A stretch of DNA of 64,000 nt from Mizuhopecten yessoensis. Taxonomy: Eukaryota. The position numbers were made by a program, and so were the translations under genes. The notes below the pieces were generated by a model. The model was not told the DNA's origin, ran no database searches, and was given only the letters and a program-made list of their open reading frames with translations. This document shows positions 18,601 to 64,000 of this stretch, piece after piece; position 1 is the first letter of the stretch, and every line of letters begins with the position of its first letter. The stretch covers positions 1,606-65,605 of the forward strand of contig NW_018480057.1 of NCBI RefSeq assembly GCF_002113885.1. The letters are read 5' to 3'.

Positions 18601-18859
18601 GATGTCCAATCCTGATGACTTCTTTTGTTAATAAAATATGTTAAACTTGGAATTGAAATGTAATCCCTCTATCTAGTTAATCATGACGATTATAATAGTT
18701 TCCGTAATCAGTAGTTTTTAAGAGGAAGGGTGATTATCCTAACGCTCAACCTCAATGAGGCCTGTTTTTTCTGTTGGATTTCTTTCCCTTAGATGATTGT
18801 CTTGGTGGACTAATGGATGTCACCATCCAGGTTTTAAAGCAGTTTTCCTTCGCATTTAA

Positions 18860-19830: not shown

Positions 19831-19851
19831 AATTAGGTCAAACGTAAGTTA

Positions 19852-20150
19852 ATGACGGACAAAGAGTGACCTACCTAGATCATCGCCGGCCAGTGTATGG
19901 ATATGAGTACTGACGGACAAAGAGTAACCAACCAAGTTCATCACTGGCCATTGTATGTATGTGAGTACTGACGGACAAAGAGTAACTTATCTACTTCATC
20001 ACTGGCCAGTGTATGTATATGAGTACTGACCGACAAAGAGTAACCTACTTAGTTTCATCACTGGCTAGTGTATGTATGCGAGTACTGACGGACAAAGAGT
20101 AACTTACCTAGTTCATCACTGGCTAGTGTATGCATACGAGTACTGACGGG
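19852..20150. repeat. ~58-bp minisatellite (5 units)
   Basis: TGACGGACAAAGAGTAACCTACCTAGTTCATCACTGGCCAGTGTATGTATATGAGTAC repeats. Confidence 0.9.
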
Positions 20151-21156: not shown

Positions 21157-21425
21157 AGTGGCCGGGTGGCACAGGGATAGCACACTTGCCATTCACGTCC
21201 GGAAATTCAAATTCCTTTTGTCCGGTATCCTACCACCCTAAGAACCTCTATGCGTTTTCATTCGGGGAATAATATTTATAATTCTCATAAAAGAAATAAA
21301 ATTTATATTTTGTAACAGAGAAACCCGAGAAGGTAAAGCTTGAGACACTTCTGTGATAGTGAAAGAGAAATAAGTTATCATTCAAAGCCAAGAAGATTTG
21401 TCCCGATGAACACAGTGCAGATGTA

Positions 21426-31019: not shown

Positions 31020-32121
31020 TTTTTAGCTCACCTGGCACGAAGTGCCAAGTGAGCTTATGCCGTGGCGCGGCGTCCGTCGTCCGTCGTCCTGCGTCAATAT
31101 TTTACTTTAAACGTCTTCTTCTTAATAACCGAAAAGCCTAGGGTGTCGATAATTGGCCAGACGCAAACTGGGATGAAGGGCTACGAAGTTTGTTAAAAGT
31201 AATGACCTTCACCCATTTTCAAGGTCACAGGGGTCAAATATGTTAAAAACTTTAAACATCTTCTTCTCGATAACCAAATTGCCCAGGGAGATGATATTTG
31301 GCCAGTAGCATGCTTGGGTGAAGGGCTACCAAGTTTGTTCAAATGAATGACCTTCTCCTATATTCAAGGTCACAGCGGTCAATTGTCTTAAAAAACTTTC
31401 AAACAACTTCTTCTCAATAACCAAAATGCCCAGGGTGATGATATTAGGCAAGTAGCATGCTGAGATAAAGGGCTACAAAGTTTGATCAAATGAATGACCT
31501 TCTCCCATATTCAAGGTCACAGGGGTCAATTGTCTTAAAAAACCTTCAAACAACTCCTTCTCAATAACCAAAATGCCCAGGGTGATGATATTAGGCAAGT
31601 AGCATGCTGAGATGAAGGGCTACAAAGTTTGTTCAAATGAATGACCTTCACCCATATTCAAGGTCACTGGGGTCAAATGTCTTAAAATCTTTAAACAACT
31701 TCTTCTCAATAACCAAAAGGCCCAGGGTACTGATATTGGACCTGTAGCATGCTGGGATGAAGGACTACCAAGTTTGTACAAATGAATGACCTTGACCAAC
31801 TTTCAAGGCCAAAGGGGTCAAATGTCGTAAAATCTTTAAACAACTTCTTCTCAATATCCAAAAGGCCCAGGGTACTGATATTGGGCCTGTAGCATGCTGG
31901 GATGAAGGGCTACCAAGTTTGTTAAAATGAATGACCTTGATCCACTCTCAACCTGATGTCCTTGTACGACATTCAAGGTCAAAGGCGTCATATGTTTAAA
32001 TCTTTTTCTTATGAATCAAACACTGATATTCTGCCTGTAGCTGTATTTTAGTCCACTTTTAAGATTACAAGTGTGAGACTAATACCAGGTGAGCGATGCA
32101 TGCCCATTGGGCCTCTTGTTT
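31020..32121 (+). mobile_element. Helentron-associated MITE with ~120-bp internal tandem array
   Basis: TTTTTAGCTCACCTGG / CCAGGTGAGC subTIRs, GGCAC-GAA-GTGCC hairpin, (CGTC)n block, ~6-7 units of ~120 bp, 3' GCCCATTGGGC palindrome + CTTGTTT. Confidence 0.9.
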
Positions 32122-34279: not shown

Positions 34280-36069
34280 GGATACACCACACACACCCTC
34301 GTCATATACCTATATAAGTATAATCCGTTATATATAGTATGGCGTTTGCAAGTAATCAGCAAAAAAATCATCTTGGGCAGAACTAGGACACTTTCTAATG
34401 ATTGTTTTAAAAATCCTCAAGCTTTATGGCATAAAATGATACAAATGATCTTGTTAAGCAAGCCTTACAAATAAACATATAAATGTACGATAAAGGCATA
34501 TACACATACATTGATACAATTGATGAAGCAATACTAAAATGGCATATAATTTTAAGCATGACCCTTGCTATGCTAAGATAAATTAAGATTAAAAAGTTCG
34601 ATAAAAACGTTTATTTTATATTAGGTTTGTAACATAATTTTTATATTTTGTGATGTGAATAACATAAACAACACTAATACACTGTATATATACAGTAACG
34701 TTGACAAAAAAAATGAGAAGAATCGTATTGATGAAGGATTGTGAAATTATTCGTGTTCACAATATCTAACGTATGTACAGGTGTAGTTATTTTACAACGT
34801 GTTGGCTGATCGTCACCAACAAAGACGTCACTAGTTTCACTGTCCAACACTACAAACACTCAGCTGTTCAACAGTTCTTCACTTCCCATGTAATGATTGC
34901 TTTCTCTTTGTACATTCCGTTACTTCTGGTATATTCGCTTCACTCGTGCCGTTTGAATTGAGAGAGGTCAGAAACACAATTGATATCAAAATTAATTGAT
35001 GACTATTTACATGCATAAGTAAAACCTATGTATGCCTACCCTTTGTTGTTTTAACAACACATTTTTGGTGTTGCGAATGATGTACCACAAATCAATAAAA
35101 CATAGGTTCATTTTGTCCTGCATTCACAGTTTAAAGATATGCACTTAATTTAATGTTAAAAATGTTATACATTGGTAACATTATTTTTCGCATGTTAAAT
35201 ATGAGGTGATCTTAATTGCAACAACATTAAATATTTACACATGGAATTCAACATTCAAAAATACCCCTAGAATTGTTTAACTACAACTGTAGTTGTCAGG
35301 TAAAAAGTACATGCATGTCTACGTTTTGTTTTTATCTACTAATTAATGGTTTGTTCTGATCACGCATTCACCAGAACGTTCAGTGTAACCTACGATAATA
35401 CTAATGTACATTTTGTTTTTATGTTCTTTGCTGAAAGGTTTTTGTTGTAAAAGCTGGATACATTGTAAGTACTAGATACATAGTTAAGACCGAGAGATCA
35501 TGAATTATCCACGAAAGGTTTCGATTGTCACCAATTATCAGTCCCAGCTTTTGAACAAAAAAAGTGTTGTTTCTTCCTGGTACTATGAGCCATTAATAAG
35601 GAATTAGACACGAACATTTCATCCTTTGACATTTCTGCATCTGGTCAATCGTCATTCTTTAAAAAAAAAAACTCTATTTGCACAATGGTGTCAGTATTGT
35701 CTCCCATTCCTATAAAACACAGTCGTGCTTACTGGCTTGATTTCAGACTGAAGTCTACCAATGGATTCCCTCTATCGTTTGGGAGAGGACTTATATGTAG
35801 GCAAGGCACGATGTCCAATCCTGATGACTTCTTTTGTTAATAAAATATATTAAAATTGAAATTGAAATAGAATTCCTCTATCTAGTTAATCATGACGATT
35901 ATAATAGTTTCCGTAATCAGTAGTTTTTAAGAGGAAGGGTGATTAGCCCAATGCTCAACCTCATTGAGGCATGTTTTTTTCTGTTGGAGATTTCCTTCCC
36001 CTAGATGATTGTCTTGGTGGACTAATGGATGTCACCATTCAGGTTTTGAAGCAGAGTTTTCCTTAGCAT

Positions 36070-36915
36070 TTAAGACAGCGAATGTGTAGTAATAGATGGA
36101 ATAGGGGGTACAACAGAAGGATTTGGTGTAAAATCTGGTGTAAAACAGGGGTGTAATATATCAGGAGTGTTGTTCCTCTTTATAATAGACTGGATAATGA
36201 GAAAAAAACAACAGCTAGTAACAACACGGGTATAAGATGGAAAAATGACAACAAAGTTAGAAGATATAGACTTTGCAGATGGCATCGCCCTGTTATCCAG
36301 CACCAAATAACAGATGCAAGATAAAGTAAATTTAATTAACAGTTACGCAGCAAATACAGGCTTAATAATCAACACAGGCAAAACAAAAGTCATGCGTCTA
36401 AATGCTAGCTACTTCCAGGCAATCTTCATCAAAACGTAAATGAATTTGTTTACATGGGAGCAACAGTCAGTAATACGGGAGACACAAACGAAGACATCAG
36501 AAGGAATATATGATTAGCATTCCACAAACTCTGATCTGGAGATGTAACGAAATAAGCAGGTAAACGAAAATAATGCTATTCAAATCAAACGTGATAGCAG
36601 CTGCGAACCATGGAAAATGACAAAGGGAGACAAAAAACTACTTGACACCTTTCAACACAAGTGCCTCAGAAAGGTTCTAATAATGTACTGGCCGAGAAAA
36701 GTGTCCAATGAAACAGTGAGAAAAACAGTAATGGTAAATAAAATCAGCGCCTTGATAAAGGAACGTCGTTGGTAATGGTTAGGATATGTTCTAAGGACGG
36801 AAACTAACGCACACCCACGCATCACACTCGGATGGGCACCGGAAGGAAAAAGAAAGAGGAGAAGGACATGTTCATGGCCTTATTCTCGGAAAGAAGGAAT
36901 TGGGTCAAACGTAAG
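36070..36915 (+). mobile_element. RTE-clade LINE fragment, duplicated copy
   Basis: Paralog of 18860-19830. Confidence 0.9.
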
Positions 36916-36919
36916 TTAA

Positions 36920-37507
36920 TGACGGACAAAGAGTGACCTACCTAGATCATCACATGGCCAGTGTATGTATATGAGTACTGACGGACAAAGAGTTACCTAC
37001 CTAATTCATCAAAGGCCAGTGTATGAATATGAGTACTAACGGACAAAGAGTAACCAACCAAGTTCATCACTGGCTAGTGTATGTATGCGAGTTCTGACGG
37101 ACAAAGAGTAACTTATCTAGTTCATCACTGACTAGTGTATGTATGCGAGTACTGACGGACATAGAGTAACTTATCTAGTTCATCACTGGCCATTGTATGT
37201 ATATGAGTACTGACGATCAAAGAGTAACTTATCTAGTTCATCACTGGCTAGTGTATGTATGCGGGTACTGATGGATAACGAGTACTTTATCTAGTTTACC
37301 ACTGGCCAGTGTATGTATATGCGTACTGACCGACAAAGAGTAACCTACTTAGTTCATCACTGGCTAGTGTATGTATGCGAGTACTGACGGACAACGAGTA
37401 ACTTACCTAGTTCATCACTGGCTAGTGTATGTATGCGGGTACTGACGGACAAAGAGTAACTTAACTAGTTCATCACTGGCTAGTGTATGCATACGAGTAC
37501 TGACGGG
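36920..37507. repeat. ~58-bp minisatellite (10 units)
   Basis: Same unit as 19852-20150. Confidence 0.9.
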
Positions 37508-37944
37508 AAAAGGGTAATGGTTTCTTGCTTCTATGTAACTAGCAAAATTACTAAGGCACCAGCTTGAACGTTTCGGATTGTTATTGAAAACTCATTTTTT
37601 TTTATACTGGATGTGATGTATTTCGCAAATGACATATGAGTGAATTTAAACACTTATAAAAATATAATCAAATACATAAAAAGATAAAGTCAAAAAATAT
37701 GAAGATTAATTGATCATTTCTCTTATCTGTTTTTCTAACAATAGACCCGATTTCAAATGAAACCCCTGTTTAAACCGCTGGTTCCTTTTTATTTTAGAAT
37801 TAATGAGAGAAACCTCTGACATATGACGGAGAAATCTCACCCCGTGAAATGATTATCTTAATTGTCTAAACCTAAGATTGCTCCAACCCATGTGGCCGGG
37901 TGGCACAGGGATAGCACACTTGTCATTCACGTCTGGAAATTCAA

Positions 37945-39053
37945 GCCGAGGATTAGACTAATAACCTGTAACTGAGCGAGATTGGGTCATCTCAGTCTCG
38001 GGCTAAGATTCTGTAACATCCCAACATCGGCTTACGCCTCGGTTGTGATTTTGTTACAGAATCTTTTTTTCTTCAAATATTTTATTTCCCTCAGCCTTTT
38101 TTTTCATAAATATATGTATATACATATACTGCCTCCAACCAGATATATATACACATATATAAATATTTTGATAGTTGATGTTTGTTACAGACTGAACTCG
38201 ACTGAAATTACCCGATCTCGCTCAGTTACAGGTAATTGTTTTTTTTTCTCTCGCACCTTTTAGTTCGAAAAGTATCCCGCCTTGGGCCTCAAATGATAAT
38301 GACCTCTTTACTACTAAAGCTACATTACAATGCTTCCGCGTAAAAAAGTAGTCCGTCCTTACTTAGATTACAACGTATTTCACAGTGTGGATTATATTTT
38401 ATCTACAACATCAAAAATCTAATGTCGGGGTGGATTCTATTTCCTGCTTATTACCTAAAATCCGTAAAAACAGCTGCTATTCTACTAAAGTTGTAAACTG
38501 TCCAAACATTTAACATTTGCATATGAAGCCCGAATGGCAATTGTAAGTGACGTCAATGACCCTGCCTGACTCAAAACGTCATGAAATCACGTCACGAACA
38601 ATAGTGTGACCCGAAAGGTCACTAAAATTCCCCCACCATTCTGCGCGTGTAAGCGACCTAGACCCGTGGGTCGGATAGAATTTCGAATATCTCGGTCTAG
38701 TATGCGAGAATACAGAATCTCAGCCGGAGGGTTTCTTTGGCAAACAATAACCGTAGAAGATATTTTCCCAATCTTATCAATAAAATGTTCCACAACTATG
38801 GATATTAGCCATGAAGAGGATTCTTTTCCCCTTTTCTATCTTAAATATATGTTCGAAAACAACAGAAATCAGCATTTGGAATTTGGTATCTTTCAAAGTT
38901 TGCACATGTTTTCCCGTTGAAACCCCCCGTAACGTACTTTGTTGCTGTAACGTCATTCTATTGTTAAGTTCGATTGAAGTATTACGTAATGACGTAATGC
39001 TTACTATCATCGGGAATAACAGAGATTTTATATCACCGGGGATGACAGAGAAG
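37945..39053 (+). mobile_element. Non-autonomous Crypton-like hairpin element (37945-38710) plus an abutting related segment
   Basis: Long palindrome TAACCTGTAACTGAGCGAGAT...ATCTCGCTCAGTTACAGGTAA with apex TCGGCTTACGCCTC (38027-38040). Post-hairpin TCTCGCA is complementary to the end TGCGAGA (~38703). GCGCGTG + short palindrome before the end, as in the Crypton at 51720-54102. Confidence 0.55.
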
Positions 39054-39322
39054 TGTGGCCGGGTGGCACAGGGATAGCACACTTGTCATTCACGTCTGGA
39101 AATTCAAATTCCTTTTGTCCGGTATCCTACCACCCTAAGAACCTCTATGCGTTTTCATTCGGGGAATAATATTTATAATTGTCATAAAAGAAATAAAATT
39201 TATATTTTGTAACAGAGAAACCCGAGAAGGTAAAACTTGAGACACTTCTGTGATGGTGAAAGAGAAATAAGTTATCATTCAAAGCCAAGAAGATTTGTCC
39301 CGATGAACACAGTGCCGATGTA

Positions 39323-42300
39323 CTACACCTGTGGTCGACCTTTTGCATGCTTCTTACAACATCTGGATAAATAATTTGTGATGTCTATAAGGATGACGGA
39401 GCCAAAAATACAGGCGAGAAAGAGCGCGCCGACGAGGCCAATACCTTTGGAGGACGGACGTGAATCACTGGCACTGATCAACTTTCTTTTCCAAGCCGAC
39501 GTCGTGGTCTTCTGTACGAAAAGCTCTGATTTCAGGGCTTGAACCATGGACTTCAACTTTTGAACTGTCAAATTCCTAGGAACACTCTGGAGTTTGCATT
39601 TTGAACACGGACAATTCTCAGCCACTGGTTGAGTTGTGACATGGGGAAACTGAAAGAGTAAATACAGACTATCTTAGTCCCTGCTATTTTTTTATATTTT
39701 GTTTTCATCTCAGGTCATTTAAGATATTCTCGTTTTACTTATATACACATCTTAAAAATTTTGTGAAAGATACGAAGCACGTTAGTTGTTCATCATTATA
39801 ATCATTAGAAAAATAAGGATGCACGCGGTTAAACGTTAAGTTAGTCGGTTATTTAAGAAAGTAAATAATTAATGCACTAATTAAACAATTCATTCTTTTA
39901 ATGCTCATAAATGAAATCAAAGGTAAAACATGTCTAAAATGTTCCTAAAAAAGCATGTAAAAGTGCATCAAAAGGAAAACGTGCATATACAACCCATTAT
40001 CAAAGTAAATAATGAATGCACTAATTAAACATTTCATTCTTTTAATACCCATAAATGAAATCAAAGGTAAAAAAATGTCTAAAATGTTCATATGTGCATA
40101 TACAACCCTTTATCAAATTGTAATTTAGATATTATGGTTATGGCAGATAAATGTTTTACATTAATTTCAGTTATACTGGGCGATGTATATTATTGTTAAA
40201 TATAAAAAAGCAAATACAAAGAAAGGAACCATCTTTTTTGAAAACAGAAAACGTCCATGCAGAAACGAAAAAGAGACCCATTTACTGTACCCCATTTAGC
40301 ACTCAACAATGGAACGTACGTTCTAACGAATGAAAACTCGGGTTTAAAGTGACAAGAAAAAAATAAGTGCCTAGAAAACCCTTTGTTACTTTCGACTAAA
40401 ACGGATGTTTTTAATACAACAGATATTTAAACTTACAACATTCGACTACAATCTATAATTTGTGTTTAATATAACATTATTAGTTGTAAGCTAGTATTTC
40501 AGGTAAACCGTATCCCAAAAAAATCCAGTTTCAATTCAAGTTATCCTACCGATTCAACGACAGTCTGACGTAAAATAATCACCACAAATACAAAATACGA
40601 AGCAAGCAATTATACACCAATTTAAGCTAGTCGATGCTGCAAGCGAAACAATGCTTACTACACCAAATGGCCATTTCGTCTTTTAGAACTTTTAGGACCG
40701 TAACACTGAAGTTTAAAACAATAGAAATGCATGTCTAAAGTGCTTCAGAATCGGTTCCAAAACACAAAAAGACGAGCAAGGTATTTTCCAGTAATCAAGG
40801 ATTTACCACACCCGCCCGATTGACCATAGGAAGAGTCATTTAAAGAGTGAAATGCAAATCACTTGCCTGCAGGGGTGCAAGTGACGAATATTCAAGTAAT
40901 ACATGGTAACTGTTTTACTGCACACTCTGAGTACATACTTGTACACGATAAGAGTTGCCGCATTATATCTATTGGTTGATTTTATCATACTTCATATTCA
41001 CCGTTACCTGTTACAATAAACCCATATTTTCATTTCAGTGGAGAAAACCCCTCCAGTGCAGTCAGTGGAATGTTTGGGCAATATGTAAGGTAGAACGATT
41101 ACGCTATGAGGACGTGATTTTACTTGGATTTGACCTAGCTTTATATGGTGGGTGTTGTCGATGAAGCAGAAGATGCGTACCCATCCGGATCAGATGAACT
41201 GATTCTTCTTGTACGTTATCAAGGAACTCCATGACAATCTTTCCTTTGTCCATATTTTGCACTAGTTTTATCGGTTTGATATCAAGTTATTGGTTTTGAA
41301 ACTGGGATATGCTCTTGTTATTATTGTTGGTATAGTATTTAATTGTTTTGTTTTTGTTTTAGTTTTTGCTTTTTTATACATGTATTTTCAAAAAGGACTT
41401 TGGATATAAGTGCAGACAAATTTATCTGATGAGTTCTTTTTTTAAACAAAGAGCACAATACTACAAATGGTGACAACATTGATCTACAAAGATTATAATG
41501 ATCACCAATACAAAATGCATTGATTATACATGTACACGCATTACCGACACAATCATCACTTTTTCATTAATAGGAAATTCATCTGACTGCACAGACCGTT
41601 TGATAACAGAAAGCCTCCACCAGCTGCGTAAACCTATACATTATAAACACCTCATTAGAAGCTCACTCAGTACAACGGACGGAAACAGGCATACAAAAAC
41701 CGAAGCCATGTGGCGACCAACACAATAACAAACAACAATATAATGACAGGATGGACTCACGTCACATCACAACCCTTGCAGGTTCGGGGAAAGAATAGAC
41801 ATGCTGTATTCCACTGACCGATCGTAAGAGGCGACGTATGTGAGCGGTCGTACGAGGCGACTTATGTAAGCGGTCGATCGAGGCGACTTATGTGCCTTTC
41901 CCTACAAGATCGATTGGTCTCTCCTTTGTCTGCTGGATAGGAGACATTGAAGTAACTAAGGGTAGACCTGTTGTTTCCCACTGCATTTGTATTGTAAAAG
42001 GCGTCTAATGTTGAGGCCCTGCATTATCGGGGGATTTCTTCTATGTCTTTTACGAAGAGCATGGAAGGAACAAAAACTTATCTGCTGTCCCCATTGCAAC
42101 ACTTAAGATATTTTTCGTATCCTATCTTTCCTGTCCCCTGCCTACATTTTTTTCCCGCCAGTGTCTCTTCTAAAGGGACAGTTTCATCCCACGTTGGAAA
42201 CAATTATACAACAAATATCAATTATTATCTTTTCCTAACGTTTTTTTTGTGGTTTAACATACAGTTGGGGCAAACATGTTTTTTTTGCTGGATGTCGGTG

Positions 42301-45300
42301 CAGTAGAATGAATAGCACTACACACTGCATATCCTGTATTTGTTATGTTGGTCATATACAAGGTAGATGGTTATTATAAACATGTAATATATATTTTCTG
42401 TGTTTTATGCTTAATAGAGCAGTATGAAATAAAGGCTATCAAAGTACCACTACAGCCTTAGTCTTGGGCTGATACGGATTAGGATGAAAATGGTCATATG
42501 ATAACCTCTAAATATGCTAATATTAGACGTATTATCTTTTCTAAGACTTTAGTATCAACATATGCTGGTGTTCATGATATATCATATGAAATTTGACAGG
42601 CAACAAACGAATGAAAAGTTAAAACTCGCCTCCTGCTGTTGCCTCGCACTCACATCTACTACATCAAATTTCCTATTCGAAAAATACCAGTTGCTATTAC
42701 CATTACACCAGTGGGACCTCCTTAAAAAGAAGCTTTAATGTTGGAAAGGTCACCAGCCTAGCATCCCCGAAATATATAGGTAAATTGGAATATATATATA
42801 CAAACACACACACATAAATAAAGTATCGTCGATATATGTGATGGAAAATTTTAAGAAAAATATGACAAATATCAAAAATTAAAAAAAAAAATATACGGTA
42901 CAGCGCTTATATTTCACTTTGTTTACGGAATGATAATGTACACGAAATATAAGCTCAATGAATTTAATTTTTGGTATCGATTGACCTAATGATTTTGTAA
43001 AAATTTAGCAACAAACTATTCATGATGCCCACGAAACAAAACCGCGACCATTTCATCCTGCAAAGTGAAAGCGCCATACCGAATAGGAGATGGTCTACCT
43101 TAATGCCATTGCCGTACGGGACCAGTCTTGTGCTTGCTGTTATGTATCTTCTCAATTGACACGACAGGTGTCCTCCAAACGGCTCATTCTTGGATCTGGC
43201 AATGATTGTTTCTTTTGTTTGTAATTCTATGGTGGTGACAGCGAAGCCTGTGGACGACACAGGTATCCAGGATACATTTCGAGTTGTAAATTGGGCCACT
43301 ATGTCCTTTAGGTCACTGTCTTTGGCAACAAGACCGACCTGACAAGATGTTTGGTACGAAGGAGGAGGAGACACAACGTACGATTTACTGTAGGACGTTA
43401 CTGGTGTAGGGAAGTACATAGATGGATTCTGATTATACGTCGTCGCCTTGATATATTGTACAACAAGGATTCGGTAACTAGCGAGAATGTAGCAGAACGA
43501 ACATTCCATCCGGAACTCAAGCACGTCATCAATAGCATCAATAACAAATTTTAAATTTTTATCACATGATGTTATTTTCACGTCTGTGTTGTTTGCCGAT
43601 GATATGATTTGAACTAAATCGTATCCTCTTCTAACAAGAACGTATTGCTTTCCCCAGGAAGAAATAGGAGGAAGCGATTCTATCAAATGATCAGAGCCTT
43701 CAATACCGCCAATAGAGGTTCGATCTGCACCTACAAATACTCCCAGCTTGTTGTTGGACCTCACTATCACCCCGGATAGGTTACCTTTGGACAGAAGTTG
43801 GAATGTCTGCAGATGGAGTAAAGTCAGGGGTAATTCGTCACCTGCCTCGTAGGTGCGGCCGTCGAAGTCTAGGGATCCTTTAAAGGTTGAGGGGAACACA
43901 ATTGAGACATTCGTTGTACCTTGGCTCACACCTACAACTGATATGATGCAATGGCCATTTCCATGGCAGTAAGTTAGAGCCACATGGTCACTGCCTAACT
44001 GACTGTCGGGAAATGGAGTGAACATGTCACCAGAGTCAATATTTGATATATCCTCACAAACGATTGGTGTATTACCTTCTGTGATTATTCTCATACCTTT
44101 GTCCTCCTTACCCGTATCACGAAGACTCGCTACTGGCGTTTGGGTTGTAAGCAAGAAGCCATTCTGCCTAGTGATGTGAATGTGGAGCACGTTGGTCTTG
44201 TTTATCATTGTTAGGTTGGCGTTGTCGTCTTCAGTTGCAATGACAATTGATGTTTCGTGGTCGAATCCAAGTTGATTTTGTATAAAACAGAATGTAAACT
44301 GTTCGCTGACGGCTTGTTGGAAACCTTATAAAACAAATGATTTATAGTTTAATTTCGATTAGAAAGTAAATACACAGTTTCTAGCGGCACATTCGACATT
44401 GCGTTTTCCCACTATATATGTTGCGCCTTTTGAGAGCAAAATCTGGGTTTGGCTGATAAAACTTTTGTCTAAACTGTCATGTCTGTGGAGTTATGAAGCA
44501 GGTACGAACCCTAGTGGTTATTTCACATCAGTTTTGATGTTGGAAAGGTTCTTCGTTGTAGTAACAGTACCTAATAAATCTTCAATTTGCCGATTCATAG
44601 ATAACAAATCAATACAAAAGTCAATAAACAACCAATGTCTTTCGACATGCATGTAATGATATATCAGAGTATAACTTTCCCTCTCGCCGCTGAATCTGAC
44701 GATCTTATACAAAATTTCGTTAAAGTATGAAATGAGGATATAGATGGTAACTAGGTTACCTGTCGAGAGAACCTGGACGTTAGAATACACATTAAATACC
44801 GTAGAAAATCTCATATCATCGGCTAATAGATAAATACTCAAGTGTATTCTGGCTATCGAGAATCTGCTGTGATATTGAGATGATGTATCGATATATTAAG
44901 TATTTGAAGAATGGGTCATAAGGGCGTTAATTCTGATTACCAACATATGTCGACAAAAGTCATTCATAAAACAAAACTTTCTTTGAAACAACAAGCATAA
45001 AATGTGGAGGAAAAGTACCGTTTAAAGACATATGGATTACTCAAAACATTTAACATTAAAACGAAACAGCCTCAGCTGATGGAGCTAATGTCTTACAGGT
45101 ACACCTATTAGAACAGAAAAAAAACCTCCCATCTTCACCCATCCTCCGTATTTACAAGACCGTTCTGTGTGTAGCTTATCCGTTAGTGTAATGTTGGTTT
45201 TAGCAGAAGAACGATTCGAGAATTTACCTTACCCTCAACTTTGGCAAAGTTCTTGATTACCAATCATGCATACTGTCTAAATTTTACACGATCGAGGTGT

Positions 45301-45687
45301 CGAAGTATTTGTCACCATAGAAAGCTACCAATCTATTGAAAAGACAATATTTGTTTACTACAATAACTGACGCGGTCCGAGCACTATTCAATTTTAAAGC
45401 ATGTTTATCATTCAGAAAAACAAGTTATTGATTCAGTCAACATCAACATATCATCTTTGAAATTCCGCAACAAACGCAACATCGAATGCGCCGTTTGGAC
45501 GCAGTGGAATTTTTTCAATGTTTCAATTTCAATGTTTCACGAATCAGTGCATAAAAAATAAAACTGTTTTATACACAAGATTCAAAAGAACAAAACGTTT
45601 TAACTGAAATAAAACAAAACAATCCATACTTATGCTGGCAAGTATAATCCCATATAGGAACGTGTAGTACAGTCTGGACTCAGACAT
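39323..45687 (-). CDS. IgGFc-binding-protein N-terminal domain-like type I membrane protein, copy 2 (557 aa). Exons 45687-45630, 44822-44760, 44324-43099, 39649-39323
   Basis: Same exon sizes as copy 1 (58, 63, 1226, 327 nt), all frames open, GT-AG sites retained. Confidence 0.85.
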
Positions 45688-49250: not shown

Positions 49251-51081
49251 ATCGAAAGGAACCATATTAGGGTTTAAATCGGGGTAAACATATCCATAGA
49301 TCCAATTGAAAAAGACACAGTTTTTTTGTTAAGGACGTTTCATCTTTCATATTTATTTTCAAAACAGTAACATTTGTAGAGAATCATATGATGCCGTTGC
49401 TTGTAACTCATCGTTTTTAGCAGTATCCAAAAAGTATCGAGATATTTTAGATAGCAATAACGTAAAAAAACTCTGAAAAAAAGTATAGAAAAGTGATATT
49501 AATTATTGTATACGTCATGCCTACCAAAAGTCAATATAATGCTTAATAACCAATCTGTAAGCGATTGGATTTTACTTTGTGAACTTTGCACGTCTTTTTC
49601 ATAAATTCAAGGACAATCATATTTTCATTAAAAAATGTAAGTTTTGTATAAACACTTCCTATTAGATTAGATACAACTTTATACAACCCATTTTGATATA
49701 TAATGAAAACCTCAAGTTGATAACAAAATCATGGTGAACAATTCGGATTTAGTTGATAATCATCTAGTACATTCGTACAATGGGTTCAAAGCAAGATGGA
49801 CGGACATTCTTTTGTTAAAAAGCCTAGACAATATATTAAACAATAAAACTAACAATCTTTACATGGAGTCAATTATGCGTAGAACGTGATATTTATGGTT
49901 TAATATTTTATACACTGCATCACAAGTATCAGCATAACTTATATATATACAATTATACATTTTTTCTTACATAATGGAATAATATCACATACAAACTTTT
50001 AACCAAATCAGTGTCCACTATTGCTATACATGATATATGTACATTTAGCTCCCATGTCGAACAAAGTTAATCGAATTTTCTACTTAGAATAAGAGAAATG
50101 TTTATTTTGTGATATGATGTGAATGCCATGGCATGTTATGTGGGACAAATCGTTCAAAACATGGTTAGTTTCGCCTGTTTTTGAAGCTTTGGATGATAAC
50201 AAATGTTTACGTGTATTTGTGAATTTCAACATTTCTTTGAGATAAACTTGATAAAATATTAGCGTCAATTTAAAATAATTACACACTTAAAAACTGGACT
50301 CATATGTCAACATATAATCTGAGCTTGTTTATATACATATACAAAATAAATGTACACAAATTTTGAATTGCAAACAACAGTACTTTATGCCGCCTGATTC
50401 AGTTTATATTGATTCTACATGACTAGTCCCTTGGCCGGATGCGCATGATAGCCTCAGCAGATACGGACGAATAATCAATGTCAAACAACGTTTGATTCTT
50501 TTTCAAACCTCATTAAAAGCGAAGGTACAAATGATAAAAGTATCGACACCCCCAGGAGGATTGGATATCACACGGCTGTACTTCAACGGTGATTGATTGC
50601 AATCACACAGGTCATTAAAAAACAACATAGGGATATCACTTAATCGAAACACGTTACAAAGTCTAAATTAAGCGAGATTTTCCAAACAATGAGCGTCTTA
50701 TCTCGACACATTCTGTAGTAATCAGGATTTCCTGTCATATTCATTAAATGCGGCGATGTTATTGACTCTCTCGACTGCTATTTAATGCTTCGATGAAGCA
50801 TTCTCACAGTCCTTGTCATAATCTTTAGTTACAACTTAATGTTTGTTCCTTGTGTTTAGTTAGTTCCTGACAGAGATGATTTCATGTATTTCATAGGTAA
50901 CTATACTAACTATGTACTGTAATTGTATACGGGTTCGTGATGAATTTCGTTCTTGTTTTGGCGTCTCTTTAAATTTTATTGATAACTATTCGTTTCGACA
51001 TTAAATTACGATTGTATTTGTACTATCAATGATGTATGCCCTTCTGAACAGACATACAATATACTAAAGATTTTTTTTTAC

Positions 51082-51335: not shown

Positions 51336-51719
51336 GATAACGATTACGTGCTAATCGGCACGAGGCTGTCTCCCCCTAGGGGGTGACAAGCTGATCTTTC
51401 CCGGCTAAAACGGGAGACACACCTGTGAAGGGTAGGAGAATTCTGTTTATGTCTGTTCAGGAGGGCATACATCATTGCTAGTACAAATAAATCCTATTAT
51501 TTCAGTCACAACTCAGCAAACAATAATCTACAAAGATTGTAAACAAAAGCACATGTTGGGTATGAATATCGTCATTCACTTTTGATGACGTCACAATTAC
51601 CGATGACGCATTTTAATGACGTCACAATTGAACACGTGCTTATCGGCACGATGCTATCTCCCCCTAGGGGGTGACAAGCTGATCTTTCCCGGCTAAAACG
51701 GGAGACACACATGTGAAGG

Positions 51720-54102
51720 GTGGGATAATAATAGATTCTATCGCTACTGGTTGTGTAAGATAGAGAAATCTCAACCATCTGACTAAGATTTTTTGTCCAG
51801 AACGAGGCTTGCCGAGTTCTGGACAAAAAAAATCTTAGTCCGAGGGTTGAGATTTTTCTATCTTACACAACCAGTTGCGATTGATTATTTTTCTCCCATA
51901 TCTAACAGTATTTTAATGTGAAATAAAGGTAAACATGGACCCAAAACACATACAGGCAATTTGGCGTATTAATATCCATATCGGTACTACTTTCTCCCTA
52001 ACTTCATGTTGTCTGCTGAAACTGTGAAAGTACAACTTCTGTTGTTGACAACATCATGGAAAAAGTGTTTAAACTTGCAGACAGAGTCACAATAGGAGCA
52101 AATGGGTCAAAAGGGAAAATTGTGGACATTGTAAAACCTTTTGGAACTTATGTAATGTACAAAATTCAGCTGTTCCAGGATGGTAAAATAGTAACTGCTG
52201 CCAAACATGAACTTGTGAAAGGCATGCCAGATGAAGAGTTTGACTTTTTGTTTGATGAACCCATGCATATGGATGCAAGTGAGTCTGAATTCAGTACAAA
52301 TGAAAATGTGTGTGTGCCCCAACCACCTCTCATCCCCCAAACACCGACTGCTGTACGAGCCCCTCCAAAAACTGCCTCCTGTACTATGACAAGATTTGTG
52401 TCGGTCGATGATAACGAGGTTGACAAATTTGTTCACAACAATGAGAACAACAATACTAGAAAAAAAAACATTGTGTCACATGAAATTATTAAAAACACTT
52501 CTGTCTGAAAATGGAGAAATGAGGGAAACCCACAATATACCTCCGATGGAACTTGATACACATTTGTCCAAATTCATGATAGGCGTCCGGCAAAAAAATG
52601 GTAACAATTAACAACCAAGTGTTTTACGAGGGATGCTGGGGTCCTTTGAGCGATATCTCAAAAGACACAGGTATGGCACTAGTCTCGTCTCAGGATATGA
52701 ATTTTCCAAAACACGTGAAGTAATGCGGGCTAAACAAAAGGAGTTGAAAAGGCAGGGCATGGGTAACAAGCCTTTTGCAGCAGATGCCATCACTAACAGT
52801 GACATTGATTTGTTATACAAAACTAAACAACTGGGCTGTTCCACACCTGCATCGTTGATAAATACACTGTGGATGAACAACACTACACATTTCGGAATGA
52901 GAGGTGGTGGGGAAGAACACAGGGCACTGTGCTGGGGTGACATCCAACTCCATTATGACAATGACTTGTGTTTAGAATATATTGTTCATAACGAAAGGCA
53001 AACCAAAACACGCACAGGTAAAGACGCGAATAATACACGAAACGGTCAACCAAGAATGTATGAAACCCCCAACAACAAAGAACGGTGCCCTGTTACAGCG
53101 TATAAACAATACAGCGACAAACGTCCATCAACCTTTTCCGCACCCCAGCATCCATTTTATTTAGCGACGATTACTCATGTCAACAACCCTACCCTTAATG
53201 ATCAATGGTTTATTCGAGGACCCATCGGTCGCAACAAAATTGGTCAACTGTTAAAAACCATGGCAAAAAAGGCTGAACTTCCAGGGGTCGACGACAACAA
53301 ACGCCTAACAAATACCAGCGCACGTAAACATTTGTGTCAGACACTTTTGGAGAACGATATTCCCGACACACAAGCTGTCATGTTTACCGGACACAAAAAC
53401 ATTCAGTCACTGAACAATTATCGCGTCATTACGAACAAAAAACAGCACGAAATTTCGTCTTTGTTGACGAATGCATCAACGACAACAATTGCAGAATCGC
53501 ATTCACAATCGCTTACCACGTTTAGCTCGTCTGCCTCGAGCAACCGTCCCGCGATGGCGGCTGACAAAACTTCCAACGTGTCCACGTGTGCATCCTCGTT
53601 AGAGTCAATTTTCCACAATTCCAGCATTTACGGTGGAACATTCAATATACACGTCCATGATAATTCCAATGATGGAAACAAACAACATCCACGAGCTCGG
53701 AGGGCTATCATCTATAGCGACAGTGATGAAGAATGACTTTCATAACTTGACACATCTCTTCATCGTGTTTGTTGACAACGTAATGGCGTCAATCGACTTT
53801 CCGGCGAAAAACGAACTCTCGAACGAACATCACGTATTGAATAGACAAAGAAAGTTATTTACCGTTAAAAAATATTTTACTGTTAAATATATTAAGAAAT
53901 TGTTATTAAATTCATTAAAAATATTTTCCGTTTGTTAGAACTATTTTTTTATGCGGATTGTTACATTTGTTTACAGTGAAGTTCATTACAACATTCCAAT
54001 GACGTCACAGCGCGTGCAGGCTGTCTCAGCCCTAGGGCGGAGACAGATAAATCTAGCACCGGCAAAACGGGAGATAAATCTGTCAGGTGTGGGAGATTAA
54101 TA
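51720..54102 (+). mobile_element. Crypton (tyrosine-recombinase) DNA transposon
   Basis: YR-coding region flanked by imperfect 14-bp direct repeats GTGGGATAATAATA (51720-51733) / GTGGGAGATTAATA (54089-54102), with a ~180-bp palindrome at the left end (51721-51898). No TIR/TSD. Confidence 0.8.
52056..53736 (+). pseudogene. Crypton tyrosine recombinase (DUF3504 / ZMYM-KCTD1-related YR domain), two lesions
   Basis: NENNNTRKKT, LSKFMIGVRQKNG, PSVLRGMLGSFERYL, LKRQGMGNKP, HFGMRGGEEH, ERQTKTRTG, RCPV, PFYL, PIGRNKI, TNTSARK, TGHKN, SLNNY. Frameshift in the A-run at ~52460-52469 and TAA at 52609-52611; the 367-aa catalytic ORF 52633-53736 is open. Confidence 0.9.
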
Positions 54103-54212
54103 TAATCTTCCTCTACCTTAAGGGTGTGACAGAGAAATGTCCTACCCGAGGGGTGATTTGTTTGTTTGTCTTACCCGAGGCTCTGCCGAGGGTTAGACAA
54201 CCAATAAAAATC
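54103..54212 (+). mobile_element. Truncated left end of another Crypton-like element
   Basis: Hairpin TTGTCTTACCC-GAGGCTCTGCCGA-GGGTTAGACAA immediately after the Crypton right repeat. Confidence 0.55.
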
Positions 54213-55425
54213 ATGTAAAACATGTTGGCAAGTATCACTGAAAGTTAATTTTGGTAATTGAAAAATCATCTGAGGAGGATAAGAAGAAAACGTTTGAGTA
54301 AATAAATTTTAGATATTTTGAAACAGTTTAAACTAAATAATTAGAGATTAATAAGACTAACAGAGCTTTGAATAGCCTGGTAAATTAAATAAAAAGTGAG
54401 CCGGGAGGTTTAAGTTTGAATTATCATAACATTACAGCATGTTCTCTTGCATTGATGGGTTTAAGGCACTGTATATCAATGACGGATATATAAGTATCGG
54501 AATAATCCATTTGTTTTTTAAAGACCTCACTAGGGTTCTAGTGGTCTCAGTTTTAAGAACGATTACCCTTACATATGTAAATGTACGACTGGCACTTATC
54601 GTTACGTTCTTTTGCCATTGATTTGGACATAACCTTTGGCACAACATCAATATATTGTAAAAAATCTAAGTCACGTCCAAGCATGTATACTTAGTTGTCT
54701 ATAAAACAATCACAACATGTCAAAGAGACATATATTGAAATGCCAAGACACAATATTTGTAGGGGTAAATTCCGACATCGCAATCACTTTTAAGAAATAC
54801 AGTGCGACTTTACAGTAGAGGTTGAACCCTACTAAACATGTTTGCGGTGTCTACTACAATTAGACTTTTCCTAGCAATTATGAACAAACAACAAATAGAA
54901 CAAAATCAATGCCTCCTGCTGAATATCATATATATTGCTCCCGTATGGTATCTTTTTAAAAATGATTTTACGATCGAGATTTTCACCTGGTGAAAATATA
55001 AAAAAACAACCTCATTCTCAAGAAATATTCAACAGAATATTCAACAGAAAGAAGTAGGTTCCATCAAAACAAACAATGCGGCATTATTTTCACAGTAACC
55101 AATACAGTTTCACCTTGATCCTTTCACGTTATGCCACAAATCAAGAAAAAAGAGAGGAAAAATCAATGTTAATTCACTGTTCACATATCTCCTTGCCGAG
55201 TTGGTGCTTACTTTAGTTCGAGTTGTCTCATTCAGATCATTCTGGATTTCAAGTTACTCAATTTCAATGATCCACAGCATATCATTGATTAAAATTTTAC
55301 ACGAACACAAATGTAGTTAAGACTGATACAAAGGCATTTTGTATAGGATTAATAGATGTAACCCTTATGATATTTATAGTAAACCATTGGATATTCCAGT
55401 ATGGACATGTGTCAGCTGAACATTG

Positions 55426-58400: not shown

Positions 58401-60825
58401 ACAATCTATAATAATTGCTGTTCACAAGGGGACGACACATACTCTGTCGTTGGGTATATATTATTTTCATTGATTCCTCATGTTTCCCTTTCGTGTAGAT
58501 ATCGAATGAATATACTCTTTATGTCGGCTGATTCACATGGCAGCAAATTAACAAATGAGGTTTGTTTCATAAAAATCAAGTTTGTTTGATAAAAATGTGT
58601 AAAGTATCACAATAACACAACACATGTACAATTTATAAAGTATCACAATGACATAGCACAGGTACAATGTGTAAATTTATCACAATGACACAACACATAT
58701 ACAATGTGTAAAGCATCACAATGACATAGCACAGGTACAATATGTAAAGTATCTCAATAACACAACACATGTACAATGTGTAAAGTATCACAATGACATA
58801 GCACATATACAATGTGTAAAATATCACAATGACATAGCACAGGTACAATATGTAAAGTATCACTATAATACAACACATGCACAATGTGTAAAGTATCTCA
58901 ATGACATAGCACAGGTACAATGTGTAAAGTTTCACTATAATACAACGCATGTACAATGTGTAAAGTATCACAATGACATAGCACAGGTACAATGTGTACA
59001 GTATCACTATAATACAACACATGCACAATGTGTAAAGTATCTCAATAACACAACACATGTATTGATTTGTACGTGTGTATTTTAATTTAATACCAACCCC
59101 ATTTCTTTCTCAAACACTTTTAGCCTTCATGTTGCACAAATCAATATAAAAATCAAATCATTTGATAGAACGTGACTTCGTTTGATCATTATTTGTACAG
59201 ATAATAGAGAAGCTACCAATCACCTTTTATAACTAATTGGTTTACTTTGTAGGATTTAAAATGTTGCATGTTAAGGACCGTTTTAAGTCAATTGTTTCCG
59301 GTTGTTGCTAATGATGAACATTCAAATCGATATTGAAATGGCGACCTGATAAGTTACAGTATTTCACGCCAAGTGCCTTAAATATGTATATAAATATACA
59401 ATGAATCAAATCGTGATATTGAGCTTAAGAAATAAATATCACCAATGAAACAAAAGAGGTACTGTATTAAAGTTTTAACTAGTTCAGTCAACCTGAATCT
59501 TGTTGTTCACTGTCGGATAGCGTTGGCGAATCGTAAACGCAAATTTTCCAAAAGGGGTTTAAAACATAACTATTAACTCACAATTGTTTTTGAGCTTCTT
59601 GTCATCAGATGCTTAATGCATAATTCATGTCTAACTTTAGTTTTGATTTTTGATTTTTTCCCCCACAAAAATACTAGATTTGCGGGTTTATATAATATAC
59701 TATAGTGTACATTTGCGTTTAAATTGTCATTAAGTTACTCTGTAAACAACCGTTAACTAACGCTGGATTAGAGGTTAACGACTCGTTAAATTCAACCACA
59801 CCACTAACTTAACTATAGTTTTGATTTTTGATTTTTTTCCCCACAAAAATACTAGATTTGCGGGTTTATATAATATACTATAGTGTACATTTGCGTTTAA
59901 ATTGTCATTAAGTTACTCTGTAAACAACCGTTAACTTACGCTGGATTAGAGGTTAACAACTCGTTAAATTCAACCACACCACTAACTTAACTATAGTTTT
60001 GAACAACCATGGAGAGTCCTGGAGATACATGTAGTATGGCTTAGACATATGTTTTTTCTGTTAGTTCTGATATTGTTTTCTTTAACTTATTTTCATATTA
60101 AAGAAATGCGTATCGGGTGATGTGGTTTTATTTTCTAAACTTACCACATAAATTATACTAATGTTGAAATACATTATCACAATGGTCGCAAGAAGACCTT
60201 CTGTAGCAAGAACTCCGAGTATAATTCTGTGAGAAAATCCTGCTATCCCCGCACTGAAGTTGTAAGCACATATTCTGTTTTCGTCATAAAACACGTACGG
60301 GGCTGCCAGTCCCGTGAAGGGAAGCATAAGCTGTAGAAGTGTAAAAAATAGAGTAAATACAAGCACTATTATCACGTTACCACGCGTCACGGATGACCGG
60401 TAGTAGAGTGGTTTCACAGTGGCAAGATAACGACATCCAGCCATAATGATGACCACCCATGCTGACCAAATGACCATTGTGGTTGCCAACCATCCGAAAA
60501 AGGAACAAAGATGAACATCCATTATGTTTTTGCATCGAATCCACCCGCCAATCCACATTACCGTGAATAACGCCATAGTCACAAAATCGTTAACGGCGAG
60601 CGTCAGAACAAGAAGGTAATCAATCCCCAAAATGTCCGATCTAATTTTTACCAATATTATAATGGAAAAACTGTTAAACACAAGACACAAGATAAGAAGT
60701 ATTGGCAGTTCAGCCTTACTGAGGTCGAGAATACAGTCTATCTCGGGTCCGGATTGACCATTGGGCAGGGAAGACGATTCATTTGTCGAATTTATTAAAG
60801 CATCTGATGCATTTAACACTGTCAT
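55426..60825 (-). CDS. Class A (rhodopsin-like) GPCR, prostanoid-receptor-like orphan (357 aa). Exons 60825-60145, 56214-56071, 55674-55426
   Basis: N-terminal N-glycosylation sites; TM1 N, TM2 LAVND, TM3 C and MAGCRYLA, P.YY in ICL2. Middle exon LRRVNVV...TAFANVTKVVSAVYCICYAPFL (ICL3+TM6). Last exon VRLLY...LLNPMVY. All junctions phase 0; second intron is GC-AG. Confidence 0.88.
57813..58112. mobile_element. Old hAT (Ac-like) MITE in GPCR intron
   Basis: AAGGGCTGCA / TGCAGCCCTA termini, CGATA(C/T) subterminal motifs, 8-bp flanks TCTGTCAC / TCCGGCAC (6/8 match). Confidence 0.55.
58594..59062. repeat. 36-bp minisatellite (~13 units), intronic
   Basis: AATGTGTAAAGTATCACAATGACATAGCACAGGTAC units; 12-aa periodicity in the spurious ORF 58633-59058. 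Confidence 0.92.
59632..60001. repeat. ~179-bp tandem duplication x2, intronic
   Basis: TAACT(T/A)TAGTTTTGATTTTTGATTTTT... units at ~59632 and ~59811. Confidence 0.9.
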
Positions 60826-62281
60826 GTTGTTTTTACTCTCAAGTAATGATGCTATTGATGCTTCTAAATGTCCCTCACTAGTTTCCTCTCGCTAGCTTCA
60901 TAAACACATTCCTATGACAACCTGAGTAATCAGTGATTAATTTGTAAAGTTCCTGTTGGCACCATGACCAGTGAGATACAGCAGCATTGAAGCCGAGTAG
61001 GTGTAACCACACGTTAACAGTTCCATACAACAGTATATCAGTGTCTCGCTCGTCACGTCCTAACCTATATTGTATCAATAAAACCAGACCACTCATCACT
61101 CCAAATAAATATTGACAAAGGTATCTCCCTCGTCTCTATCTATAAATATACCGTGTTCGGGGTTACTGATTTACGGTATAGTAGTTTTTCCTCCGCTTAG
61201 AGTCACATACCTGTTCAGGTGGGTGTTTTTTGTATTCCTTTAAAAGAAGTTGATGTTCCAGGTAATAATCTGTTAAATCATTCCATTTGGGTTTTTTAAG
61301 CGTTGCTCTTGCTGTCTGGCCGCTTTATACATTGTGTGATTGGAACCGCGAGTTGCGTTCTGTTAAAAGTCATCCTTTTATTAAACATTTCAAATAATAT
61401 AAAATAGTCCCTCGCTGTACTGAGAGATACTTCTTGTACTTCGTGATAAACCTGTGAAAACCATAAACAATCTGGCTTATTTTATTACCAGTATTTTATT
61501 CACACGTATTCCTTGTACTGTCGAGCCTTGCTGAATCGGGCAACACTAATTCCGCTGGGCCTATCACACAAACACAATTTTGTCTCCTGTTCTTCTTCAA
61601 TCATTTTCAATATTCAAGCCGTTTTGATAGTTCAACAATTATGAATTTCCTGATAAATATACGTTATGTAACATATTCTTGCCCTTTCCTATTTGTATTC
61701 TGTTAAAACATATTCTGTGTAACCCATCTTCACAGTATTGAAGCCATATCGCTAACTTATGGCTGTGGTTTCTGGCCGTATTGTAGTTGAACGTTCTCAT
61801 ATTCCTTAACTAAGTATTCAATTTCAGCCAGCTAATCCCTGCAATACCATTCATATTTGATATGCTATATTGAACGACGGAAACTGTCACGTTGGTAAAC
61901 CATCCAGGCCTTTACCATCCAGCCTTTATACACTCCGCTAATGAGGACTTATACATCTGGGAATTTGAGAAGGACGTCAGTTCATCTCATGTCTATTTCG
62001 TCATTAGGTGGTTAACGCTCAGGTACATCAAAATAGTGCTATCAACATGATTGTATTGTATGACGGCTAGCGACTGACAATCATCATGTCCGGTGGCCGC
62101 ATTGTGTGTGATCACGTGATAATCAATATGAATGATCAGGGTCAACCTAAATGATATAACGCGTTGCGGTTATTTTTCCAGTATCATGTAGTTTTGAAAT
62201 TTTATAATGAAAAATTGCAAGCTGTTAAAGAGAATTATTACATTTCTAATTACATTACATAAAAAGAAGAAGGTTTCATTC

Positions 62282-64000
62282 TTAATACATAAAGTACATC
62301 ATTGTGTACATGAGGTATGTGGCTGAATACACGAGGTACACCATTTTCTATATGAGATTTGTGGCTTTATACATGAGGTACATCATTTGGTATGATGAGT
62401 ATGTGGCTTAATACATGAGGTACATCATTTGGTATATGAGGTTCGTGGCTTAATACACGGAGTACATACTTTTGTATATATGTGTATGAGGTTTGTGGCG
62501 CTTAATACATGAGGTACATCATTTTGTATATGCGGTTTGTGGCTTTATACATGAAGAACATCATTTTGTAGATGAGGTATGTGGCTTTATACATGAGGTA
62601 CACCATTTTGTATACGAGTTATGAGGCTGACTACACGAGGTACAGCATTTTCTATATGAGGTTTGTGGCCTTATACATGAGGTACACAATTTTTTATATG
62701 AGGTATGTGGCTTAATACATGAGGTACACCATTTTGTATATGAGGTATGTGGCTTAATACATGATGTACATCATTTTGTATATGAGGTATGTGGCTTAAT
62801 ACATGATGCACATCATTTTGTATATGAGGTATGTTGCTTTATACATGAGGTACATCATTTGGTATGATGAGTATGTGGCTTAATACATGAGGTACATCAT
62901 TTGGTATATGAGGTTCGTGGCTTAATACACGGAGTACATACTTTTGTATACATTTGTATGAGGTTTGTGGTGCTTAATACATGAGGTACATCATTTTGTA
63001 TATTAGGTATTAGGCTGACTACACGAGATACACCATTTTCTATATGAGGTTTCTGGCTTTATACATGAAGAACATCATTTTGTAGATGAGGTATGTGGCT
63101 TTATACATGAGGTACACCATTTTGTATACGAGTTATAAGGCTGACTACACGAGGTACAGCATTTTCTATATGAGGTTTGTGGCCTTATACATGAGGTACA
63201 CCATTTTGTATATGAGGAATGTGGCTTAATACATGAGGTACACCATTTTGTATATGAGGTATGTGTCTTAATACATGATGTACATCATTTTGTATAAGAG
63301 GTATGTTGCTTTATACATGAGGTACACCATTTTGTATATGAGGTATGGTGCTTAATACATGATGTACATCATTTTGTATATGAGGTATGTGGCTTAATAC
63401 ATGATGTACATCATTTTGTATATGAGGTATGTTGCTTTATACATGAGGTACACCATTTTGTATATGAGGTATGGTGCTTAATACATGATGTACATCATTT
63501 TGTATATGAGGTATGTGGCTTAATACATGATGTACATCATTTTGTATATGAGGTATGTTGCTTTATACATGAGGTACACCATTTTGTATATGAGGTATGG
63601 TGCTTAATACATGATGTACATCATTTTGTATATGAGGTATGTGGCTTAATACATGATGTACATCATTTTGTATATGAGGTATGTGGCTTAATACATGATG
63701 TACATCATTTTGTATACGAGGTATGTTGCTTTATACATGAGGTACACCATTTTGTATATGAGGTATGGTGCTTAATACATGATGTACATCATTTTGTATA
63801 TGAGGCATGTGGCTTAATACATGATGTACATCATTTTGTGTATGAGGTATGTGGCTTAATACATGAGGTACACCATTTTGTATATGAGGTATGGTGCTTA
63901 ATACATAATGTACATCATTTTGTGTATGGAGCATTTGGCTTAATACATGAGGTACATCATTTTGTATATGGAGTACTGAGTTCGTGGCTTAATACATGAT
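62282..64000. repeat. 42-bp satellite array running off the window end
   Basis: GGCTTAATACATGA(G/T)GTACA(T/C)CATTTTGTATATGAGGTATGT, about 40 units. Confidence 0.95.

Follow-up and report, generated by a model that had tools for sequence, protein, structure and literature searches.

Why should one transposon lie exactly between the ends of two others? The question is raised by a locus in a 64,000-nucleotide (nt) stretch of the Yesso scallop genome (Mizuhopecten yessoensis, NCBI RefSeq assembly GCF_002113885.1, contig NW_018480057.1, positions 1,606 to 65,605 of the forward strand), here called the window, where a Crypton, a transposon carrying a tyrosine recombinase gene, abuts the tail of one relative and the head of another. 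An earlier note on this DNA had proposed that such units are inserted at each other's termini and accumulate as ordered arrays, loosely like integron cassettes. Among eukaryotic DNA transposons no class is less well understood than the Cryptons, and their ends, target choice and mechanism have so far been largely guesswork; a 2011 survey reported neither terminal repeats nor a defined end structure in animal Cryptons (PMC3212892). We find base-exact stacking at this locus and elsewhere in the genome, and it is probably explained by target mimicry, that is, by a recombinase that takes the ends of resident relatives for its own joint, and not by an integron-like platform.

Organization of the locus

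The Crypton is a complete-ended CryptonA-type element of the family that we call C and spans 2369 nt (51729-54097, forward strand). It opens with a head (L) palindrome (51729-51900) that ends in TTCTCCCA, carries a broken copy of a tyrosine recombinase gene on the forward strand (52056-53736) and closes with a tail (R) motif (54011-54097). The latter comprises a CTAG-apex hairpin, an internal hot spot, site-I, between 54045 and 54046, a second hairpin, and a tip consisting of GGGAGA (54091-54096) plus one base. The related right-end motif that the earlier note had placed directly to the left is there: an R motif at 51633-51728 ends in GTGGGATAA at 51728, and the first base of the Crypton is 51729. 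It belongs to a non-autonomous, 5'-truncated unit of family DB on the forward strand (51491-51728), with a body of TGACGTCA boxes and its own site-I between 51675 and 51676. The span 51491-51728 is matched exactly by at least 40 genomic copies at 89-93% identity; directly before the body these copies have a head palindrome of ~172 nt, which is missing from the window unit at 51491. The proposed homology between the R motif on the left and that of the Crypton was likewise borne out (BLAST, 75% identity over 80 nt, E 7.6e-6). A 17-mer singled out in the earlier note was found at two places in the window only, the version in the Crypton itself being shorter by one base.

The hairpin-bearing left end that had been seen directly to the right of the Crypton is also genuine. 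The Crypton tip ends at 54097 and the next head opens at 54098, with the first 116 nt of a DB-family head palindrome (54098-54213, forward strand; full length ~172 nt) whose right arm is truncated. More than 40 DB head copies start at the base equivalent to 54098 (88-92% identity), and full palindromes were read at loci L032-L060. The window copy breaks off near 54204, and reads of other individuals carry the palindrome on past this point. All four pieces of the locus, including an isolated R fragment farther left, lie on one strand. The loose ends of contigs assembled from four individuals diverge at 51729 and 54096.

The Yesso scallop genome harbors a group of CryptonA transposon families, of which C encodes a recombinase and DB, E and F are abundant and gene-less; no open reading frames (ORFs) were found in the gene-less units. 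C, DB, E and F follow a common plan, of which C, DB and E give the fullest view: a head palindrome of ~170 nt opening with TAATAGAATC, a body with TGACGTCA-type boxes, and a tail motif of ~90 nt with the CTAG-apex hairpin, the second small hairpin and a GAGAA-type tip. An alignment of R motifs from five families has a mean column identity of 65%, with the sub-motifs in the same order throughout. Folded alone, the R motif is weak (z -1.9), and we make no energy-based claim for the tail hairpins. At other loci a C-type head palindrome is combined with a B-type body: contigs from two sequencing runs join position 51899 to 51494-51497. These joints suggest that families exchange modules where the palindrome has its inner end.

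The family C Crypton and its recombinase

The limits of the element are well defined. Seven full-length family C copies (95-97% identity) and ~150 deletion derivatives of ~390 nt have both ends in common, the derivatives retaining 235 nt of head and 74 nt of tail at 94-97% identity. All 27 family C copies with differing flanks start with TAATAG and end with GGGAGA plus A. The two ends of the Crypton, TAATAG... and ...GGGAGAA, are unrelated to each other, and the element has neither terminal inverted repeats nor long direct repeats. Read depth in the four individuals suggests ~5 full-length C copies, ~150 C-type heads and ~750-1400 DB-type ends.

The longest ORF piece of the window recombinase matches the Pfam family DUF3504 (8e-25) and, more weakly and in part, Phage_integrase. 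The gene is broken by two lesions: the reading frame shifts within an A-run near 52461-52470, and TAA replaces a tyrosine codon at 52609-52611. In the collapsed contigs of the four individuals both positions are intact, with TAT at 52611 and, at 52461, a run shorter by one A. One of the seven full-length copies is intact and encodes 565 residues (L002:1831-3528). Its product matches DUF3504 at 3.5e-25, well over the cutoff, and Phage_integrase at 23 bits, just under the cutoff of 27.1. The nearest match among named proteins comes from Mizuhopecten yessoensis (97% identity). The sole relative with a solved structure is QRICH1 (1.6e-7), a domesticated Crypton derivative. Twelve relatives of 38-54% identity all retain R288, K323, R429, H452 and Y461. 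These residues are located in the expected motifs, and by motif they are a putative catalytic Arg...Arg...His...Tyr set, one that the domesticated DUF3504 genes have not kept. No second ORF longer than 150 residues was found within the element, and no reverse transcriptase, RNase H or second enzyme among its domains and ORFs. Its gene content, together with the absence of terminal repeats and of target duplication, makes 51729-54097 a Crypton of the CryptonA group. The encoded recombinase probably performs the joining of head to target, and family C presumably moves via a circular intermediate.

Stacking across the genome

To see how often units stack, exact-word patterns were counted over the 988-Mb assembly; the counts are lower bounds, and the reversed-pattern control gave 0 each time. 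A figure of 37% nesting for family C, obtained from 60 sampled loci, was rejected as biased since the query carried the tail motif, and the pattern counts were used instead. Families C and DB together have 517 exact heads. Twelve of them (2.3%) abut a relative's tail tip; another 34 (6.6%) lie at site-I, after the word that closes the CTAG hairpin inside a relative's tail motif, an internal site that the earlier note did not include. Together the two classes account for 8.9% of the heads, again a lower bound; 471 of the 517 are preceded by neither motif word. Unrelated left flanks were found at no fewer than 15 of 27 family C junctions and at 23 of 26 DB junctions. Counted from the other side, ~35 of 1380 exact tail tips are followed by a head, and 92 by post-site-I sequence, on more than 50 contigs. 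Joints between a tip and a head of any family are direct in 40 cases and inverted (a tip followed by a reversed head) in 0, and they show no duplication of the target. Random placement would yield ~0.0004 events at tail tips and ~0.0002 at site-I, so that the enrichment is ~3e4 and 1.6e5, respectively.

Stacking is therefore real, precise and polar, yet it occurs in a minority of copies. The proposal that the terminal core is reused as an integration site holds, given exact joints in one orientation, tens of thousands-fold above random placement. The proposal that autonomous and non-autonomous units form ordered arrays holds in part: different families do pile up head-to-tail, but this is not the rule, as ~90% of copies are solitary. 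Tabulating flanks had been suggested as a check, with mostly solitary copies in random flanks counting against stacking; the copies are indeed mostly solitary, but their flanks are not random and imitate the tail-head joint, as described below.

Target choice and insertion hot spots

Solitary insertions have a clear target consensus. Among 28 non-nested left flanks, G stands at position -3 in 22, A at -2 in 27 and T at -1 in 21; in 42 right flanks, GGGAGA is followed by A at +1 (39/42), A at +2 (36/42), T at +9 (34/42) and C at +10 (24/42). The corresponding p values range from 3e-6 to 1e-16, with ~1e-12 for GAT on the left. These flanks imitate the element's own tail-head joint, because that joint reads GAGAA, then TAATAGAA, then TC. 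The word at site-I, GAGAC or GTGAC, comes right after the CTAG hairpin and precedes the tail tip by 53 nt. Nested insertion there leaves no target duplication: the native E motif gagac/aagg becomes gagac, followed by an element ending in GGGAGAA, followed by aagg.

We propose the following mechanism. The recombinase would join a head to its target at a single point, without duplicating the target. Preferred targets would imitate the tail-head joint, with G-A-T/C/A on the left, then A-A, then TC some 8-9 bases on, and each resident element would offer two very good imitations, its own tail tip and site-I. Relatives would attract one another because these two sites are the best imitations of the joint available. 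Incoming units of any family would land on the hot spots of relatives in the same orientation, and the outcomes would be units stacked head to tail, as R(B), Crypton and L(D) are in the window, units nested at site-I, and tandem repetition of the 53 nt that separate the two sites.

From site-I to the tip there are 53 nt, and the 92 joints of a tip to post-site-I sequence include runs of period 53, eight in a row on contig C5536 and many on C216. Twelve of the 92 join different families and are right-hand junctions of nested insertions. The arrays on C216, C306 and C5536 are known from pattern coordinates alone. The 53-nt arrays would have been seeded by recombination between tip-like words in direct orientation, and may have grown by later unequal exchange. 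Family F forms arrays of up to five units with periods of 395-465 nt, on five contigs. Periods of ~22 nt equal the spacing between GGGAGA in the second hairpin and GGGAGA of the tip. The last part of the tail motif is repeated in short arrays at C216:41738-42099 and C63:17518-18116 and in a single duplication at L023, in the right flank of a family C copy; the periods of these three, ~22 and 43 nt, match the spacing of the two GGGAGA words. At C306:563651-566232 we observed ~46 tandem copies, with a period of 57 nt, of a unit containing the CTAG-hairpin/site-I word.

Several points weigh against target mimicry. The spacer from the crossover to TC is 7 nt in the targets and 8 nt in the tail-head joint, and the base at -1 varies; for both reasons the position of cleavage is uncertain by ~1 base. 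Among the contigs listed from short reads, which break in repeats, none joins 51728 to 54098, and neither a transposition event nor a circle or an empty site was seen in the four individuals, whose short-read contigs stop at repeats. The 60 sampled loci are enriched for nested copies by the design of the query, and the pattern counts alone are unbiased. Mobilization of one family by the recombinase of another, among C, DB, E and F, is suggested by shared end motifs only. Family C may no longer be active, because its full-length copies have diverged by 3-5% and the ORF is intact in only one of the seven. Finally, homotypic arrays are able to grow by unequal crossing-over without any recombinase.

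The head palindrome and a possible folded site

The best-surviving alternative leaves the hot spots as they are but has the recombinase act on a single strand that has folded, or on a cruciform, comparable to integron attC or the attP of CTX phage, with one strand exchanged at the tip and replication completing the event. We consider this possible though rather unlikely. It would account for single-point junctions without homology, as there is one crossover point and no duplicated core, and its appeal lies in the head palindrome. In the Crypton the two arms (51730-51794 and 51827-51891) are 88% complementary, and the head folds as DNA at -67.7 kcal/mol (z -17). When tip plus head is aligned to the reverse complement of the palindrome's inner end, that inner end proves to be the inverse complement of the element's own tail tip. 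The complement is family-specific and changes in step with the tip: TTCTCCCA in C and DB, TTCTCTTACCCTG in E and TTCCTGC in F. Since the inner end holds the complement of the tail tip, the palindrome is complete only across the tail-head joint. The crossover lies 8-13 nt inside this joint-spanning palindrome, the arms beside it differ in length by a constant 2 nt in three families, and CGAG occurs in both arms on the same strand, which gives mismatches of one polarity. In the folded-site reading the joint would be a folded-DNA site of the attC/CTX type, with the 2-nt bulge and the CGAG mismatches marking one strand, an interpretation that we offer tentatively.

Relatives in other organisms lend it some weight. 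Downstream of the gene, at a distance of 200-450 nt, most marine-metagenome relatives of the recombinase (38-53% identity) have a palindrome of 130-180 nt that shows a same-strand mismatch of the same kind. Such long palindromes lie just downstream of the recombinase gene at L061:2120-2300 and also at L062, L090, L094, L097 and L139; that at L061 is preceded by a tip-like word and a AAAGAATC start, resembling the scallop tail-head joint. In the metagenome relatives, however, the mismatch is CTCG on the sense strand of the gene, so that its polarity relative to the recombinase gene is opposite to that in the scallop element. Moreover, neither experiment nor reads show single-stranded intermediates, the palindromes can also be explained as paired binding sites in duplex DNA, and the many copies with large apex deletions may simply be dead. 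If the folded-site reading were true, stretches between two tip-like words would act as cassettes that are excised, stacked and shuffled across families; such stretches would range in size between the 53-nt segment bounded by the two sites and the autonomous element of 2.4 kb. Eukaryotes would then have a counterpart to the cassette dynamics of integrons, and integron-like recombination would extend to animals.

Unlikely alternatives: repeat by-products and a composite element

A second alternative holds that stacks and arrays arise in repeat-rich DNA by unequal crossing-over, replication slippage or segmental duplication, with no choice of site by a recombinase. The window itself provides an example of the last of these. 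A unit of a fourth family, F, lies at 20455-20740 on the forward strand, with its R tip at 20740 and a head-like start at 20741; ~45 genomic matches end at 20740 or within a few bases of it. The earlier note had listed this end-then-start adjacency and a further one at ~38710. Both are genuine tip/head junctions, but they represent one event, because 20740/20741 and the paralogous 38710/38711 lie in one segmental duplication of ~17.5 kb (17501-27889 versus 34771-45417, 92-98% identity). The three stacking examples in the window are thus real but reduce to two independent loci. In both duplicates the F unit is preceded, at a distance of a few hundred bases, by a satellite with a period of 58 nt (19771-20150 and 36897-37575).

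In addition to this duplicated example, the arrays with periods of 53, 22 and 57 nt are homogeneous and could be extended by slippage or unequal exchange. As a general account, by contrast, the by-product view is very improbable. Junctions between families are base-exact (C after B, D after C, and the 12 heterotypic joints of a tail to a second half), the orientation is absolute (40 versus 0), the array units start and stop at the two insertion hot spots, and solitary copies show the same target consensus.

The remaining alternative makes the flanking motifs parts of a single larger composite whose long direct repeats would resemble the split repeats of DIRS and Ngaro elements. It deserves next to no credence and is refuted for C and DB. 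In the window the Crypton body does have one R motif to its left and another to its right, and four sampled copies have ~53 nt of host motif on both sides, but insertion into a duplicated unit of 53 nt accounts for these two-sided cases. The left flanks of most C and DB copies are unrelated, 471 of the 517 heads have neither motif word before them, and there is no reverse transcriptase.

Other features of the window

An isolated R-motif fragment of B/DB type, already noticed in the earlier note, lies to the left of the truncated DB unit (51346-51440, forward strand, 95 nt, 94% identity to 51633-51728), with single-copy DNA on both sides. Read depth rises from single copy to ~1000x at ~51346 and falls back at 51440, where the loose ends of contigs also diverge. 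Between this fragment and the truncated B unit lies one arm of a 42-nt inverted repeat (95%; arms 51015-51056 and 51448-51489). Both arms are single-copy by read depth, and the repeat is a local inverted duplication of unique DNA. The possibility that it is a miniature inverted-repeat transposable element or the head palindrome of the B unit was rejected, as its arms are single-copy and have neither the head start nor the tip complement. Scanning the whole window against Rfam gave no match to a known RNA family; the hairpins therefore do not correspond to any ribozyme or RNA already described there. Three unrelated tandem arrays are present at 62177-63966, 58594-59145 and 31100-31977, with periods of 42, 36 and ~146 nt, respectively.

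Comparison with known systems

The scallop elements agree with CryptonA as published (Goodwin 2003; Kojima and Jurka 2011, PMC3212892) in having a single ORF for a tyrosine recombinase with a DUF3504 region and no reverse transcriptase or DDE transposase, in lacking terminal inverted repeats, long direct repeats and target-site duplications, and in non-autonomous derivatives that far outnumber autonomous copies. They differ from the published description in their highly structured ends, with a 170-nt head palindrome that carries the tail-tip complement and a two-hairpin tail motif found across families, and also in yielding a target consensus, self-targeting and arrays. In the Crypton literature searched, structured ends, a target consensus and stacking are not described for animal Cryptons. 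The locus and the genome-wide counts together supply exact ends, a target consensus, two hot spots, strict polarity and a joint-spanning palindrome that co-varies with the tail tip. Ends and targets so defined are concrete substrates for the biochemistry of a eukaryotic tyrosine-recombinase transposon. They also point to how a site-specific recombinase might seed short arrays of satellite DNA (periods of 53 and ~22 nt) and mix modules between transposon families, which bears on the origin of the abundant repeat arrays of bivalves.

In function the nearest analogues are bacterial, namely integron cassettes, different Xer-dependent phages stacked at dif, and integrative elements that accrete in tandem; DIRS1-type retrotransposons also offer a likeness. 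Integron cassette arrays are built by the tyrosine recombinase IntI through attI x attC recombination. The scallop elements resemble them in the class of recombinase, in hairpin sites with strand-asymmetric imperfections, in a single-point crossover without a duplicated target, and in polar arrays. They differ in that the units have no fixed attI platform by the recombinase gene, no cassette promoter and no genes, that ~90% of copies are dispersed, and that insertion occurs also at an internal site of each unit, not just at the end of an array. An integron has its integrase by a fixed attI and a promoter, followed by attC cassettes; here the recombinase gene lies inside one mobile unit. The likeness to integrons that the earlier note had drawn consequently does not extend beyond recombinase class and polarity: there is no fixed platform, no integrase-plus-promoter arrangement and there are no gene cassettes.

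Elements that use XerCD/dif, such as the CTX, TLC and VGJ phages, together with tandem accretion at attL/attR, offer a parallel in that the integrated element leaves a usable target at its end, and later elements of the same or other families integrate adjacent to it, giving ordered heterotypic arrays. CTX phage integrates through a folded single-stranded site. Unlike the scallop elements, these systems use one chromosomal site and host recombinases; the scallop elements encode their recombinase, live in an animal host and also use loose mimic sites throughout the genome. DIRS1-type retrotransposons share with the scallop element a tyrosine recombinase and an internal segment complementary to the joined tips, but the scallop element lacks a reverse transcriptase, RNase H, a methyltransferase and inverted terminal repeats. 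Helitrons and Helentrons, finally, are similar in their hairpins, lack of target duplication and arrays, but in family C, to which this comparison is confined, the autonomous copy with the same two ends as the short units encodes a tyrosine recombinase alone and no Rep/helicase.

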